This document shows, piece by piece, positions 1-62,000 of a DNA stretch of 64,000 nt (position 1 is its first letter; each line of letters starts with the position of its first letter). Below the pieces are notes generated by a model, which worked only from the letters and a program-made list of their open reading frames with translations, had not been told where the DNA came from and did not search any database. Origin of the DNA: Anaeramoeba ignava BMAN (taxonomy: Eukaryota; Protista; Anaeramoebae); NCBI GenBank assembly GCA_028826165.1, contig JAPDFW010000081.1, positions 1 to 64,000 of the forward strand, written 5' to 3'. A program made the position numbers and the translations under genes.

Positions 1-3000
1 AATCAAATTTTACATTTTAATTCTTTTTTTTTATTATTTTTGAATTGAAAATATTCAAATTTCTTTCTTTTAAAACAAATTTTTATAAAAATTCATTCAA
101 TAATAAAAGAAAAGAAATATTTACATAAAAAATCAATCTTTATTTTCAAAAAAAAGATATAAATAAATTAATCTTAAATTTATTAAAAAGTTCATTGCAA
201 ATAAGAATTGAAAATTTATTTATTCATTCATTCATTCATATTCTTTTTTTTCTGAATCTTAAATCAAGATTAATTAGATTTAGGATATATTTCTGTTATT
301 TTAATTCATGTTTTCTTGAAATAAATATTAATTACAAAAAAAATGAACAAAAAAAAAGAAGAAGTAACTCGAAAACTTGAAAATTATTTTAGAGATAATA
401 GAAAAGGAATGGAAATGATTGTTTTTTTTTTTGGTTGATGAATTTTTTGATTATTTCATTCAACTAAAGGAATTGAAAATTATCCATCAAATTTTTTTTT
501 GTGTTTAAATAAAAATTTTTGAAAAATAGATAATAAATTAGAATATTTCGATTATGAATTTTTTAACTCAAAGAATCTCTTAAGATGAAATTTTTATCAC
601 TTTAATGTTCTATTACTTCATTTAAATGGAATTTTTTCCAAAGATATCGAAAAGATAATTATATTAAATGAAAGAAGAAATTTTCAAAAAAATAAAATCT
701 TTTTTTTTCCTTTTCTCTCAAATATATCTCAAAATTTCAATATTATAATTCAATATAATTTTTTTTTTCTTCTTCTTACATAAGGAAGAAATAATGATAT
801 TGATTTTGTAAAAAAAAAGGAAATGAAAATATGTGAAATTGAGAAAAGTATCCAAATGTTTTTATTCAAAATATTTTTCATTTTGAAATTATGTTTTCCA
901 CAAAATTAATTCGTTATTATCAACCAAAAAAAATGAAAAGGATTAAAGAGATTAAGTAATTCTTTTTTTTTTCATTGTGAATTTCTTCTAAGGGTGATTT
1001 TTTTTCAATTTTGGGAAAAACAAATTTTCTAATTTTTGAAATTTAAATTCTGTTTTTTATTTTAAATAATAAATCAAAATTAGATAAAATAAATATCTTC
1101 TTTATGGAAAAAAAGAAGATAATAAAAGGAAATTGTAATAAAAAATCAGAAAAAGAAATAATTCAATTTTTATAATCTCAGAAAAAAAAAAGGGAAATAA
1201 AATAAATTTGAGATTGATTTCAGATAATTCTTAATTTGTTGATTATCTGCTCTTATCATTTTTTTTTCAATTCCAACAAAATAAAATCAAATGGAAAAAA
1301 ACTTCCCGATTTTTATTTTATTGTTTATAAATTTTGAGAAAAAAAATTTAATAATTTTAAAATAAATTAAAATTGAATTTTCTTTTGTTAATAAAAATAA
1401 AAATAAATATTAATAAATTAATAAATTTAAATTTGAATTTATTTGAAAATAATCAAAATTATTGAATTTTTTTTTAAAATTAATTATTATTATTATTATT
1501 AAATAAAAATAAATACATCTTGTTTATTCCATTCAGATCTTTTTTTGAATAAAATTTGGAAAATTTCAAAATCAATTGGTTCCTTTTTTGAAAAGTAATG
1601 AAATAAAGTTTCCTAAATTTGAATAAAAAAATAAATAAAGAATAAATTAAAATTAGTTAAAAAGAATTAATTTGTTAAATTAAATAATTTGTTTTTTTTT
1701 GAATTGATAAAAACTAAAAAAGAATAATTTAAATTTTTTATTAACTCAAAATTAATTAATTTAAATTTGTGTTTTTTTTTTTTGAAATTAAAATAAAAGG
1801 AATTGAAAAATAATAAATTAAGAATGAATAAATAATAATTATAATTATCAATTTTTCTTTAGAAATTTTACTTTATTTCCTTCATTCTTTTTAATTTTTC
1901 ATTAAATAAAAAATGAAAAACAAAATTTATTTATTTATTTATTTATTGGGAAAAAGAAAATAATAAAGATATTATCTGGATTATGAATTATGAATAAAAA
2001 AATTTTTTTGATGAATAAATTAATTTTCAAATTGAATTTATATTTTTGATTTTTAATAATAAATTTCCAAATAATAAAATAGATTTAAAATTTTTTATTA
2101 TTAAAAACAATTTAATTTAGATTTAATAATCAAAAAAACAAAAATTATTTTAAATTAATTATATCCTAATCAAAAAAAGAAAATATAAATAAATTGGGAA
2201 AATAAATGATTAGAGAAAATATTATATTTATTATTATTATTATTGATTTCAATTTTTTTTTCAAAAAGAGAAAATTTAATTTTATCAAATAAATATCTAT
2301 TTTTTATTTCTTTAATTTTTTATCAATTTTTTTTATTATAAAAAAAAGAATTGAATTTAGTTATTATTGATAAAAATAAATAATTATTAAAAAAGAAATC
2401 AAATATCTCTTTGTTTTTTGTTAATCTTTCTTCATTCTTGAATTCTATTAATTTCTTATCTAATCAATAATAATTAATAATAAAATTTTGAAAGAAAAAA
2501 AAAACAAACTTTATTTTCAAATTTGTTTTCAAATAATTTTTGATATAAGAATTATTTAGTTTTTTTTTTGATAAATATATTTCTAATCTTTTATTTTTAT
2601 TATTAATTTAAATTTAATAATTTCAATTTTCTCAAAAGGAATTTAATTAATTTGATAAATGTTTCTATTATCAACTTTCTCAAATTTTGAAAATAATATA
2701 ATAATAAAAAATCATAATTTGTTATTTTTAAATTAAATTAAATTAAATTAAATTAAATTAAATTAAATTAAATTAATAATAATAATCAATTTTTTTTTGA
2801 AATTAATAAATCTTATTTAATTTAATTCCCAAAATAAAAAAGAGAAAGAGAAAGAGAAAGGAGAAATATGTTTGTTTTTTTCCAAAATGGCAAAAATAAA
2901 GAAAATAGTTATTAATGCAAAAAAATGAAAAATATTATGTTAGTTTTAAATTTTAAATTAAAAAAATTTTGTTCTCTTTCTTTTTTGGCAAAGAAAAATA

Positions 3001-3132
3001 ATGAAATAAAAAAAATAAATTATTATGATTTGAGAAAATAATTATGATAGAGAGAAAATATTGAATTTTTTTTTGTTTATGAAATAATATGAAGTTTTTG
3101 AAAATTGAAATAAAAAGAAATAAATTATATTT

Positions 3133-8748
<5,616 letters not shown>

Positions 8749-55500: not shown

Positions 55501-58500
55501 ATGAATAATCCAATTAAAGATTATATTTTAATTTGCGAGTTTTGCCAAGTTTCTGGGCCAGTTTTAAAATTTTCATATCCAAAAATTGATGAAATAGTTG
55601 GGACAATACCCGTTCAATTACTCAAAACAAATTACGAAGTTCAACCATCTTTTCAAATACAAGAAGACATAATATCTATTCAAAAAGTGTATTCAAGTCA
55701 GGATCAAATCTTCTATGCATATGTAAATTCTTTTAAACAAGATATATTCTAAATTACAATTAGTGACAGTTTTTTTCCGTTAAAAAAAATGTAAAATCAA
55801 AATAAGGCTCATCGATTTTTTTTGTTTGATTCTCAAGCAAGAGGTTTTACTCGCTCAATTTGTCTTGCTTATTTAACAAATAACTATGATAAAATTATGA
55901 TGAATTTGAACCAATTTTTATTTAAATTTTCAAACATTTCAAATCTTTTAAAACTTGATAATTTTGCTTTATTTTTAAAAAGATTTAAAACCCAAAATTT
56001 GGATTTGGATTTTACATTAAATCGAGCAAATGAAAATAAAGAAGATAATGTAAAATTTCAAAATTTAAAAATTCAAAATTTAAAAATTCAAAATTTAAAA
56101 ATTCAAAATTCAAAATTCAAAATTTAATTAGAGCAAATTTATACAAGATTGGAGTAAAGAAACAATGAGAATATTTTCAATCATTTTTGAAAATATTCCA
56201 AAAAATGTGATCGATATTCTTTTGAAAATATATAAAAATCAAAATGAAAAAATTTCTCATTTATTTGAAACTGAAAACTTTAATTCTTTGGAAAATAAGC
56301 TAAAACTGAAGATGGTTTTTGATATATTGTTTCAAGATTATAATCCAAAAAGGCATCAATTTGTAAAACAAGATGAGTTTCTTCCAAATATCGAAACAAT
56401 TTTTCATTCTCATTTTTATCAAAAAGCTATAAATAATTTAATTATTCCTCTTTTGTCTAATTTTTCACTTACTAAAATTTCAAGATTATTTGATTTTGAT
56501 TTGTCAAGTTTATCAAAATCAAATTATTTATTTTTTCATGTTGGAGGAATTCCCATTTTGAATTTTTATCAATTCAATGAATTTATCAATAATAATGATT
56601 TGATTTATATCCGGAGTTTGGATTCCATAGAAAATATTTTTTTAAATGATAGTAATTTAAATAATTATCTAGAGGCTTTACTCTCTATTGAGAAACAAAG
56701 TAAAAGTCAAGATTTGTTCTCTTTTTTTGTAAAACATTTTGATGAAAATGAAAATCAATTAGAAAATGAAAATCAATTAGAAAATCAATTAGAAAATGAA
56801 AATCAAAATCAAAATCAAAATCAAATTGAAAATCAAAATCAAATTAAAAATCAAAATGAAAATCAATTAGAAATGAAAATCAAAATCAAAATCAAAATCA
56901 ATTAGAAAATAAAAATCAATTAGAAAATGAAAATCAATTAGAAAATCAATTAGAAAATGAAAATCAAAATCAAAATCAAAATCAATTAGAAAATCAAAAT
57001 CAAATTCAAAATCAAAAACAAATTCAAATTCAAAATCAAATTCAAAATCAAAATCAAAATCAAAATCAAAATCGAAATTGAAAATGAAAATCAAAATCAA
57101 AATCAAAATGAAAATAAAAATCAAAATCAAAATCAAAATCAAAATCAAAATGAAAATGAAAATGAAATTGAAAATGAAAATGAAAATCAAAATGAAAATC
57201 AAAATCAAAATCAAAATCAAAATCAAAATGAAAATCAAAATGAAAATCAAAATCAAAATCAAAATGAAAATCAATTAGAAAATCAAAATCAAAATCTAAA
57301 TCAAAATCAAATTCAAAATGAAAATCAAAATCAAAATCAAAATCAAAATCAAAATCAAAATCAAAATCAAAATCAAAATCAAAATCAAAATCAAAATTAA
57401 AATGAAAATCAAAATCAAAATCAAAATCAAAATCAAAATCAAAATCAAAATCAAAATAAAAATCAAAATCAAAATCAAAATCAAAATCAAAATCAAAATC
57501 AAAATAAAAATCAAAATCAAAATCAAAATCAAAATCAAAATAAAATTGAAAATGAAAATGAAAATAAAAATCAAAATCAAAATCAAAATCAAAATCAAAA
57601 TCAAAATCAAAATCAAAATGAAAATCAAAATGAAAATCAAAATGAAAATCAAAATCAAAATCAAAATCAAAATCAAAATCAAAATCAAAATCAAAATCAA
57701 AATCAAAATCAAAATCAAAATCAAAATCAAAATGAAAATCAAAATGAAAATCAAAATGAAAATCAAATTGAAAATCAAAATGAAAATGAAAATCAAATTG
57801 AAAATCAAATTCAAATTCAAAATCAAAATAAATTTCAAAATGAAAATGAAAATCAAATTGAAATTCAAATTCAAAATCAAAATCAAAATGAAAATAAAAA
57901 TCAATTAGAAAATGAAAATGAAAATCAAAATGAAAAACAAAATTTCAGATCAAACAATTTGACATTCAATGATTTATTTGAATTTAAAAAATTAAAACCA
58001 TTAATTGATAGTCTTTCAACCACAGAAATAACAAATATAATTCGATATCTAGATGGATATCTAGAAAATTTATTATTCTCTCTTCTAATTGGAAGACCAG
58101 TTGCTATAATTGGAGATGCAAAAAATAAAGAAAAAATATTTTGTATAATTCGATTCTTAGCAATTTTTGTTCCTGGAAACCAGGAATTTCAATATTGGAT
58201 AGAATTACCATTGAAATTTGTAGATTTGGAAAGTATTAAATTATGTGGAATGTCAAAAAAAATTGGCATTTCTCAAGAAATAAAAGAATTTATAACAATA
58301 CTTGATTATGAAGAAAATAGTTTAGTTTCTCCTTTTTATCCACCTTCTTCTTCTTCTAAGAAAAACATTATTACGAAATTGATGAGAATCAAAAAATTAT
58401 CATCTGACAAAGATCTTCTATTGTTTTTTATTTACCAAACTTTTTATGAATTTATAGTCAAAATTTACATTCATTTCTGTTTTATGCAAATTCAACAATT

Positions 58501-58750
58501 TTCTCAAGTTGGAAATTTTGTACAAAAATTCACAAAAGAAAAATTCAGTGAAATATATGATTCAGAATTATTACTTCATTCAGATACTGAATTTGATTTT
58601 AAAAATTTTGGTTTTGTAGAAGAGGATCTATTAATTATTAAAAATTTTTACAGAATTATTACTTCTCAAATTTACACTAAAAAAATAGAAAAAAATAAAG
58701 GTTCAATTCATTTAGATTTCCAAGAAATTATTAAAATTTCAAAGAAATGA
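55501..58750 (+). CDS. SMCR8: SMCR8-like longin/DENN protein (folliculin family) with long central QN tract
   Basis: Exons 55501-55722, 55807-56049, 56132 onward. DYILICEFCQVSGP, AYAHRFFLFDSQARGFTRSICLAYLTNNYDKIM, FSLLIGRPVAIIG, LAIFVP, ITILDYEENSLVSPFY match SMCR8 motifs from memory. The 56745-57940 QN tract has frameshifts (indel errors or an intron). Confidence 0.85.
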
Positions 58751-58881
58751 AAATGAAGATTAAAAAAAGAAGAATTTTAATTGATTATTTTTTTAATTAA
58801 ATTTTTTTTTTTTTCCATAATTAAAATTTTTTTTTGAATTTTTTTCTTTTAAAAAATAATTTTTTTTTAATCTTTTTTCTT

Positions 58882-59047
58882 GTGTAAAGACAAAGGAGAG
58901 ATGGTTAGCAACTCTCGGGAACACGAATGAGTTTGTTTTATTCTTTATTGAATTAAAACACAGTTTTTCTTAAGGTTTTTTATAATTATTTTACACTTAC
59001 AGCCTTTCGTTTTTTAAAAGCGAAAGAAAAAACCTTAAAACCTTTTT
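58882..59047 (+). ncRNA. RNU6ATAC: U6atac snRNA (minor spliceosome catalytic RNA)
   Basis: 5' GTGT start; AAGGAGA box at nt 12 (58893-58899); GATGGTT then AGC triad (58907-58909); ISL AACTC-TCG-GGAACA-CGA-AT-GAGTT (58910-58933) with AU bulge; hairpin TGTTTTA..TAAAACA; AACAC..TTAAGG motif; 12-bp 3' stem 58970-58981/59027-59038; oligo-T at 59043-59047. 3' end approximate. Confidence 0.88.
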
Positions 59048-59076
59048 GATTTTTATTTTTTATTTTATTTTTATTT

Positions 59077-62000
59077 TTATTTAATTATTAATCTGTAAAC
59101 ATAAATTGAATTATCTTCAGTTCCTATTATAATTGAAAGAGAATCTTCTATATTTTCTTGTTTTGATTTTTTGAAATTTCCAACAACAATATCAATAATC
59201 CAAGAATTAAATTTTTCTTCAGCGATTAACTATAAATTAAAAATTTTTTTTTTCCGATTTTATTATAAATAATTTTATAATTAATTTTATAAATAATTTA
59301 ATAAATAATTTAATAAATAATTTTATAAATAATTTTATAATTAATTTAATAAATAATTTTATAATAAATTTTATAAATAAATTTTATAAATAATTTTATA
59401 AATAATTTTATAAATAATTTTATAAATAATTTTATAAATAATTTTATAAATAATTTTATATATAATTTTATAAATAATTTTATAAATAATTTTATAATTA
59501 ATTTTATAAATAATTTTATAAATAATTTTATAAATAATTTTATAAATAATTTTATTAATAATTTTATAAATAATTTTATAATTAATTTTATAAATAAATT
59601 TATAAATAATTTTATAAATAATTTTATAAAAATATTTATTAATAATTTTATAAATAATTTTATAATTAATTTTATAAATAATTTTATAAATAATTTTATA
59701 AATAATTTTATATTTAATTTTATATTTAATTTTATAATTAATTTTATAAATAATTTTATAAATAATTTTATAAATAATTTTATATTTAATTTTATAAATA
59801 ATTTTATATTTAATTTTTATAAATAATTTTATAATTAATTTTTATAATTAATTTTATAAATAATTTTATATTTAATTTTATAATTAATTTTATAAATAAT
59901 TTTATTAATAATTTTTATATAATTTAATATTTAATTTTATAAATAATTTTATAAATAATTTTATAAATAATTTTATAAATAATTTTATAAATAATTTTAT
60001 AATTAATTTTATAATTAATTTTATAATTTTATATTTAATTTTATAATTAATTTTATAAATAATTTTATAATTAATTTTATAAATAATTTTATTAATAATT
60101 TTATAAATAATTTAATATTTAATTTTATAAATAATTTTTGTATATAATTTTATTAATAATTTTATAAATAATTTTATTAATAATTTTATATTTAATTTTA
60201 TATTTAATTTTATAAATAATTTTATAAATAATTTTATAATTAATTTTATATTTAATTTTATAAATAAATTTATAAATAATTTTATTAATAAATTTATAAA
60301 TAATTTTATAAATAATTTTATAAATAATTTTATAAATAATTTTATAAATAATTTATAAATAATTTTATAAATAATTTTATTAATAATTTTATAAATAATT
60401 TTATAAATAATTTTATATTTCTTGATTGATTTACTTTGCCATCAAGATAAGCAAAAAGAAATCCAGAATAGCATCCACAAATAACAATATTATTAGAAAT
60501 TCCTTTTATATTATAAGTTGCTACACAAGAAATTTGATATTTTAAATTTGAATAAAAAGTCATTTGAAAATTGGAAAAGACAAATAATTCACTGAATTGA
60601 TTTACTAAAAGAATTTGATTTTGATTTTCATTTTGATTTTCATTTTGAATTTGAATTTGATTTTGAATTTGAATTTGATTTTGAATTTGAATTTGATTTT
60701 GAATTTGAATTTGATTTTCATTTTCAATTTGATTTTCATTTTGAATTTGATTTTGATTTTGATTTTGAATTTGATTTTCATTTTGAATTTGAATTTGATT
60801 TTGAATTTGATTTTGAATTTGATTTTGATTTTTATTTTGATTTAAATTTTGATTTTGAATTTGATTTTGATTTTGATTTTGATTTTGATTTTGATTTTGA
60901 TTTTGATTTTCATCTTGATTTTTATTTTGATTTTGGATTTGTTGACTATTATTTAAATTAGAAAGAAACATTCCTTCACATGCTGTTTCTATTTGTGATG
61001 AAATATTAATTGAAAAAGCAAATGAATCTTCTGCATAAAAAAGTATAGCTTTTTCATTTCTACAAATCATTAAATATTTTGTTTCAATTCCATTTCCATC
61101 TTTAAAAATAACAGGTGATAAAAATTTAATTGATTTTTGTTTTTTTTCTTGTTTTTGTTTTGAGTTTTTTTTAATATTAGTTTCATTTGTATTAATTTTC
61201 CAAATTGTTTCGTGATGATCAAATTTAGAAATTATTCCATTTTGAGTTCCTATGATTAGATCACCATTTGATTCTTTTAATGATGTAATTGGAGTTTGAA
61301 AATTGTTTCTTCCAATGATTCTTTTATTGTGGAATATCAATACATTTCCTTTAAAATTAAAATTCATTTATAAAATTAAAATTAAAATTAAAATTAAAAT
61401 TCATTTATAAAATTAAAATTAAAATTAAAATTGAAATTGAAATTGAAATTGAAATTAAAATTAAAATTGATTTTGAAATTAAAATTCATTTATAAAATTA
61501 AAATTAAAATTAAAATTAAAATTAAAATTAAAATTAAAATTGAAATTAAAATTAAAATTAAAATTAAAATTGAAATTAAAATTGAAATTAAAATTAAAAT
61601 TAAAATTAAAATTAAAATTAAAATTAAAATTCATTTATAAAATTAAAATTAAAATTAAAATTAAAATTAAAATTAAAATTAAAATTAAAATTAAAATTAA
61701 ATTTTAAAATTAAAATTAAAATTAAAATTAAAATTCATTTATAAAATTAAAATTGAAATTCATTTATGAAATTAAAATTGATTTTGATTTTGATTTTAAT
61801 TTTGATTTTGATTTTGATTTTGAAATTGAAATTTGAATTACCAGAATTATCACCAATAATTAAATCATTTGAACCAAATCTCATAATATCTGAAATTAAA
61901 ATTTGTTGTATTGATTCACCCATTGTTTCTAAAATTAATTCTTCATTCTATTTTCGAAAATAATTGTAAAATTAAATTTAAATTAAATTTAAATTAAAAT

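Follow-up and report, generated by a model that had tools for sequence, protein, structure and literature searches.

A divergent and very probably functional U6atac snRNA gene in the metamonad Anaeramoeba ignava

We found that positions 58882 to about 59047 on the forward strand of the window, the 64,000-nucleotide stretch of Anaeramoeba ignava BMAN DNA analysed here (contig JAPDFW010000081.1, positions 1 to 64,000), carry a divergent U6atac gene which we consider to be real and very probably functional (probability roughly 0.88). The Rfam U6atac model (RF00619) matched 58882-58994 at 29.9 bits (E = 2.3e-5 in the 901 bp around the site), and U6atac was the sole Rfam family matching at E ≤ 10 within this interval. 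The locus was also the top U6atac match genome-wide (E = 2.7e-4). The second and third genome-wide matches were rejected as spurious, as the triad region is missing from both. The Rfam gathering score for U6atac is 33 bits, of which 29.9 bits falls short; a scan at the gathering cut-off reported nothing at the locus, and the gene is therefore overlooked by a standard scan. It should be noted that a gathering score is a curation threshold rather than a biological feature, and that the U1 and U4 of A. ignava are likewise below theirs. The U6 model gave no match at the locus at E ≤ 1 and a canonical U6 of 88 bits lies elsewhere (contig C70:323239-323380, reverse strand), so the locus is not the U6 of this organism. 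The original prediction had called this a U6atac and not a U6 snRNA gene and had proposed a comparison of the two covariance models; U6atac wins that comparison, with a score still under its gathering cut-off.

The gene occupies a 326-bp gap between two convergent genes (58751-59076; the left stop finishes at 58750 and the right stop is at 59077-79). Its first 52 nt have a GC content of 44%, against 8% upstream and 3% downstream, which agrees with the GC-richer island that had been described in this gap. As the score is sub-threshold, we considered whether the island might be a U6 copy that has diverged, or a match arising by chance amid convergent 3' ends. The 19-nt core by itself is not diagnostic, with chance occurrences in bacterial-type metagenome contigs. 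Among the non-animal metagenome matches of this core (32 of the 80 loci, with an animal-type internal stem-loop (ISL) and possibly human, were left out of the counts), a paired ISL with the bulge A was present in 10 of the 12 with a 5' GTGT and in 2 of the 22 without one; none of the matches was an Anaeramoeba-like orthologue. The chance cores thus have no 5' GTGT and mostly no ISL, and the A. ignava locus has neither an ACAGAGA box nor a 5' stem-loop, leaves the U6 model silent and has a promoter element at +68, all of which make a U6 copy or a chance match scarcely credible. A generic 5' pattern allowing ≤ 3 mismatches has a single occurrence, and none in 100 shuffles. An ungapped alignment of the first 29 nt with a plant-type U6atac from metagenome data has 23 identities and is in exact register, bearing out the claim that order and spacing are as in known U6atac.

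The 5' half of the RNA contains the elements expected of a U6atac, and every motif which the original prediction had placed was found in position. The GTGT 5' end (58882-58885) is exactly 10 nt ahead of the 5'-splice-site box AAAGGAGAGA (58892-58901), a spacing shared with metagenome plant-type U6atac. With only these 10 nt before the box there is no 5' stem-loop, and the well-supported start is set by GTGT and by the distance to the promoter. The box is the ‘AG’ variant and is invariant in alignment A1; within it AAGGAGA (58893-99) starts at position 12 of the gene, and AAAGGA forms a 6-bp duplex of −5.9 kcal/mol with TCCTTT at the minor 5' splice site. Next follow UGGUU (58902-58906; GGTT at 58903-06), predicted from its homologous position to be the helix Ia strand for U12, and the catalytic AGC triad (58907-58909), in register with that of the organism's own U6. 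The ISL (58910-58933) consists of a 5-bp lower stem (AACTC/GAGTT, 58910-14/58929-33), an AU bulge (58927-28), a 3-bp upper stem (TCG/CGA, 58915-17/58924-26) and a 6-nt loop, GGAACA, which is one nucleotide longer than in the plant type. All 7 scored pairs are kept relative to the plant-type rows, a result equalled by 0.24% of shuffles (p about 0.002); in three of them both bases differ, and one G-U is now A-U, so that the ISL does, as had been claimed, differ in sequence and still pair.

The central and 3' parts are more divergent. An A+U-rich central hairpin (58936-58958), taken from the Rfam alignment, is weak at only −1.5 kcal/mol. It is followed by the conserved motifs AACAC (58957-61) and TTAAGG (58970-75), which together span 58957-58975 and are present in the plant-type rows and in the Rfam consensus, and by a 69-nt 3' stem-loop (58970-59038) with a 12-bp basal stem, a 10-bp upper stem and a one-sided bulge of 22 nt (58982-59003). 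This stem-loop folds at −17.1 kcal/mol (z = −3.66; 0 of 200 shuffles) and begins around UUAAGG, as it should in U6atac, but is expanded. Its predicted tip is a 3-nt loop, and a ACACUUAC stretch sits in the bulge, compared with the CUACUU-like 65K-binding loop of other U6atac. The motifs and long 3' stem of the original prediction are therefore upheld, and its second hairpin is not well supported by folding energy.

The 3' end is presumed to be a T5 run at 59043-59047. Internal runs (T5 at 58964-68, T6 at 58976-81 and T6 at 59010-15) equal or exceed this terminal T5 in length, and the U6 of the organism ends in T10. Either Pol III passes through short T runs, or the RNA ends sooner than drawn here, or it is a Pol II product. 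A Pol III tolerant of T5-T6 seems the somewhat better guess, and Pol II a plausible if less favoured one. Trichomonas U6 is reportedly a Pol II product. In a published paper the Trichomonas U6 promoter is termed Pol III.

Upstream of the gene, 68 nt before the 5' G, is the octamer TCCATAAT (58814-58821, forward strand), a likely snRNA promoter of USE/PSE-like character. The same octamer was found ahead of U6, U4 and a U11 candidate. A pattern built from these four loci, U6atac included, had 18 matches genome-wide and none for the reversed control, and the 14 new matches include U1, two U2 copies and one C/D-box-like RNA. RNA starts lie 62-72 nt downstream of the element for U1, both U2 copies, U4, U6 (67 nt) and the U11 candidate. 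That the best U6atac match and the best U11 match of a 43-Mb genome are each at such a distance from one of 18 TCCATAAT sites is far more than chance would give. These two loci did, however, contribute to the pattern, and its independent confirmation comes from U1 and U2. Genes for all major snRNAs were located: U2 (loci L054 and L058), U1 (L066), U4 (L008), U5 (C57:42823-42945, 50 bits) and U6 (C70). U5 was missed by the TCCATAAT pattern and by a follow-up pattern, so it does not follow that the element is universal among snRNA genes. It is nevertheless of practical use in A. ignava, both for locating snRNA genes and for driving guide RNAs.

We also made some observations on these other RNAs. 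The A. ignava U2 is short by the Rfam measure and stem I of U4 with U6 is interrupted. Should U6 start 67 nt downstream of its element, it would be some 33 nt longer at the 5' end, and an additional hairpin would precede the usual 5' stem-loop. An RNA-like island on C46 (L053:1573-1745, about 384633 onward, forward strand) begins exactly 68 nt downstream of TCCATAAT and has two 5' hairpins followed by a C-box-like motif (ATGAAGA), a D box (CTGA) and a closing stem, with no Rfam match; it is possibly an independently transcribed C/D snoRNA in a U3-like position.

The left neighbour is represented by a 3' coding part at 57959-58750 (forward strand), which probably belongs to the same SMCR8/folliculin-like gene as an upstream exon at 55822-56127 (SMCR8 E = 2e-7, Folliculin E = 0.0014). 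This gene (window 55501-58750, forward strand) contains long hexamer-repeat tracts. The right neighbour is a convergent gene on the reverse strand (59077-61963) without a Pfam or PDB match of note, whose last exon (59077-59229) adjoins a repeat-filled GT-AG intron of 1205 nt (59230-60434). In both X3 and X5 its spliced junction shows up as loose ends, and these runs are therefore RNA. Contigs of both runs cover the U6atac gene, with the X3 contig extending from 58710 through the promoter to 58981. This contig is explained by read-through from the left gene, and so speaks neither for nor against U6atac expression; no snRNA-specific signal was found in the RNA-run contigs, which as assembled contigs do not make strand and ends visible. 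The contig from X5, a different sample with a depth of 2, carries an extra T after 58975 in the 5' arm and an extra A after 59026 in the 3' arm. This reciprocal pair would lengthen the basal stem and could reflect either strain variation or an artefact.

We also searched the genome for substrates of a minor spliceosome. The sequence ATATCCTTT followed by 16 A/T had 30 genome matches compared to 9 for the control, counts which are inflated if, as regions present twice in the assembly suggest, there are haplotype duplicates. Removing AT-AC introns restored a continuous Pfam profile in three genes, with profile positions running across the introns from 225 to 231 in KTI12, 226 to 228 in apyrase and 158 to 159 in an actin-related protein. 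A branch-like TTYYTTGAY was present within 100 nt at 6 of 18 exon-flanked sites, five of them independent; among 439 low-GC 100-mers taken from the window, one had it. The motif can thus be recognised at roughly one in three of these sites, and many AT-AC introns do not have it; a strict AT-AC pattern with a canonical branch site and short spacing had one match, which is not an intron. At L028/L036, L024 and L026 the branch-like motif lies ~25-40 nt from the likely AC end, compared to the 10-20 nt usual for U12-type introns, and L027/L037, L035, L038 and L043/L049 have no branch motif. Several of the ATATCCTTT sites are clustered within about 10 kb on L028 and L027 (C64) and on L035-L037 (C80). 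This ATATCCTTT-rich region is present twice in the assembly, and the same holds for C53/C69 and C100/C121. The search for U12-type introns suggested with the original prediction accordingly yielded AT-AC introns, of which 33 are already published for A. ignava.

Among the partner RNAs, a U11 candidate was found at C1:50977 onward (forward strand; L007:1501-1665). Its score of 26 bits (E = 0.2) is sub-threshold alone; it has a 5' AAAGGA pairing with TCCTTT, three hairpins, a conserved third loop, an Sm-like site and TCCATAAT upstream. As in U6atac there is A+U expansion: the second hairpin is A+U-only, and a long 3' stem lies beyond the Sm site. U12 was not found with the Rfam model, and promoter, helix Ia and branch-pairing patterns gave background only. 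Nor was U4atac found with the Rfam model, and stem I/II and kink-turn patterns yielded no corroborated locus (eight patterns were tried for the two RNAs altogether). Out of 2200-6800 RNA candidates, only 42-50 were scored in the genome covariance search, and U1, U4, U11 and U6atac are all sub-cut-off here, so that misses of U12 and U4atac are to be expected. Of the covariance searches proposed for U11, U12 and U4atac, then, the first gave a candidate and the other two were blank.

Several other matches were set aside. Two U12 Rfam matches (E = 1.5 and 4.7) have no promoter element and resemble coding or low-complexity DNA, and a U4atac Rfam match (E = 0.004) is the major U4, which scores higher as U4 and pairs with U6. 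A duplicated CAATGA..GAG..ACTGCTA on C53 (39122-39158) and C69 (218256-218290), both forward strand, resembles a U4atac kink-turn and stem I and is uncorroborated; the two copies differ by 2 T. A near-complement of the U6atac ISL region occurs at C57:272251-272267 (reverse strand; 10/10 then 6/8 matching), and a TGCT looked for 20-50 nt downstream of it was absent.

Searching spliced genes exon by exon, we found Pfam matches above cut-off for PDCD7 (E = 7e-12), CCDC84/CENATAC (E = 4e-8) and the SNRNP25-like Ubiquitin_4 (E = 6e-14), and these sequence matches support the presence of putative minor-type protein families. The zf-U11-48K and zf-SCNM1 models had no match, a weak test given that these are 25-residue models in an intron-rich genome. 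The proposed protein search therefore returned three families above cut-off and not the 48K protein. [quoted passage not shown]

It could be argued that the gene is a relic, that is, a true U6atac homologue no longer transcribed or used, with the AT-AC introns handled by the major spliceosome or vanishing. The failure to find U12 and U4atac, the branch motif in only about a third of exon-flanked sites and RNA-run contigs explicable by read-through are compatible with this, as is the condition of its relatives: A. flamelloides has 8-10 GT-AG RTATCCTTT introns and no AT-AC introns (PMC11550330), and a preprint on A. pumila gives 22 introns in all and mentions neither U12 nor snRNAs. However, a 44% GC core with an intact triad, a compensated ISL and an exact promoter distance would not last unselected in 8% GC non-coding DNA, the AT-AC introns retain the full RTATCCTTT, and three minor-type protein families are above cut-off. 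We therefore find a relic very doubtful.

The two blank searches could also mean that U12 and/or U4atac are truly lost, with an active U6atac and U11 working with the major U2 and/or U4. UGGUU-AGC can pair on paper with GCU-UC-GAUCA of the organism's own U2, but a plant-type U6atac allows the same pairing, which is therefore not special; the short and often missing branch motif TTYYTTGAY is a further point for such a hybrid. The organism's U4 pairs with its own U6 at −30.0 kcal/mol and with U6atac at only −15.9 kcal/mol, so that a separate U4atac-type partner is to be expected. The genome also has PDCD7 and CENATAC, both of which act together with U12 and U4atac; the misses are expected from the small share of candidates scored, and even U5 was missed by the promoter pattern. 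A hybrid machine thus seems quite improbable. An unlikely but broader proposal is a rebuilt minor spliceosome that retains U11 and a long U6atac but has lost U12 and/or U4atac or altered them beyond recognition, with the major U2 substituting where the branch site has degenerated. U6atac, with its inner T6 runs and T5 end, would then share its promoter with the Sm-class snRNAs and might be a Pol II product.

Under our preferred reading of a functional U6atac, a single active gene would be transcribed from the upstream TCCATAAT common to other snRNA genes, and its RNA would be delivered paired to a predicted U4atac, as in animals and plants. U6atac would displace U11 at the 5' splice site, where AAAGGA can be seen to pair with the TCCTTT of RTATCCTTT introns, and would form helix I with a predicted U12. 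By homology, the ISL would fold and the AGC triad and AU bulge would bind catalytic metals. The long 3' stem-loop may be an A+U-expanded form of the loop which targets U6atac to the minor spliceosome in animals and plants. The RNA would serve roughly 30-40 U12-type introns of the genome.

For A. ignava, the 2024 genome paper (PMC11550330, Supplementary Note 1) counts 33 introns of the AT-AC type and 32 with RTATCCTTT, and regards a minor spliceosome as strongly suggested, from intron ends only and with no branch motif found. Its supplement has no mention of snRNA or U6atac and names no minor-spliceosome protein. That intron note concerns the same genome and reaches the same conclusion; what we add is the catalytic RNA, the U11 candidate, the promoter element and the weak TTYYTTGAY motif. 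The original prediction named no report of minor splicing in this group, and its novelty is less than was claimed because the splicing had already been inferred in print, the very circumstance under which the prediction itself expected its novelty to fall; the U6atac snRNA itself was not found reported, and we found no publication linking Anaeramoeba to U6atac in a literature coverage that was incomplete. The gene is the first minor snRNA that we can find for any metamonad, and provides RNA-level confirmation of the printed inference.

In a 2023 survey, Metamonada and Discoba are among 23 complete losses of the minor spliceosome (PMC9887622 supplement). A U6atac with substrates and partner proteins contradicts the loss inferred across Metamonada, and an intact U6atac in a metamonad places the loss in separate lineages instead of at the group's base. 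Wherever among the former excavates the root is put, a minor spliceosome in the last eukaryotic ancestor also becomes better supported. The gradient within Anaeramoeba, from the AT-AC introns of A. ignava through A. flamelloides with none to the few introns of A. pumila, provides a series for the decay of the machine.

The A. ignava gene resembles the ‘AG’ U6atac of plants and animals in RF00619 in its 5' GUGU, 10-nt leader, AAAGGAGAGA, GGUU-AGC and bulged ISL, its AACAC and UUAAGG motifs, its 3' stem-loop and the absence of a 5' stem-loop. It differs from them in that the sequence of the ISL stem is replaced and the loop has 6 nt where theirs has 5, an A+U-rich central hairpin takes the place of the short G+C hairpin, and the RNA is about 166 nt rather than about 125 nt long, with its 69-nt 3' stem-loop, 22-nt bulge, internal T5-T6 runs and no clear CUACUU-type loop. 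With U6 (RF00026), including the organism's own copy, it shares the AGC triad, the ISL with AU bulge and the upstream element (at +67 in its own U6), whereas U6 is set apart by its ACAGAGA box, one or more 5' stem-loops, U4 and U2 as pairing partners, a T10 terminator and a separate locus on C70. The lack of a 5' stem-loop and the additional 3' stem-loop are features of U6atac (PMC5855946) and, with the AAGGA box (PMC2396436), identify an AG-type U6atac. The ‘CC’ variant, known from Acanthamoeba, Physarum, oomycetes and cnidarians, likewise includes protist U6atac found by covariance model (PMC2396436). Unlike that variant, the A. ignava gene is of the AG form (AAGGA) present in vertebrates, seed plants and early fungi (PMC2396436), and its box thus bears on which U6atac variant is ancestral.
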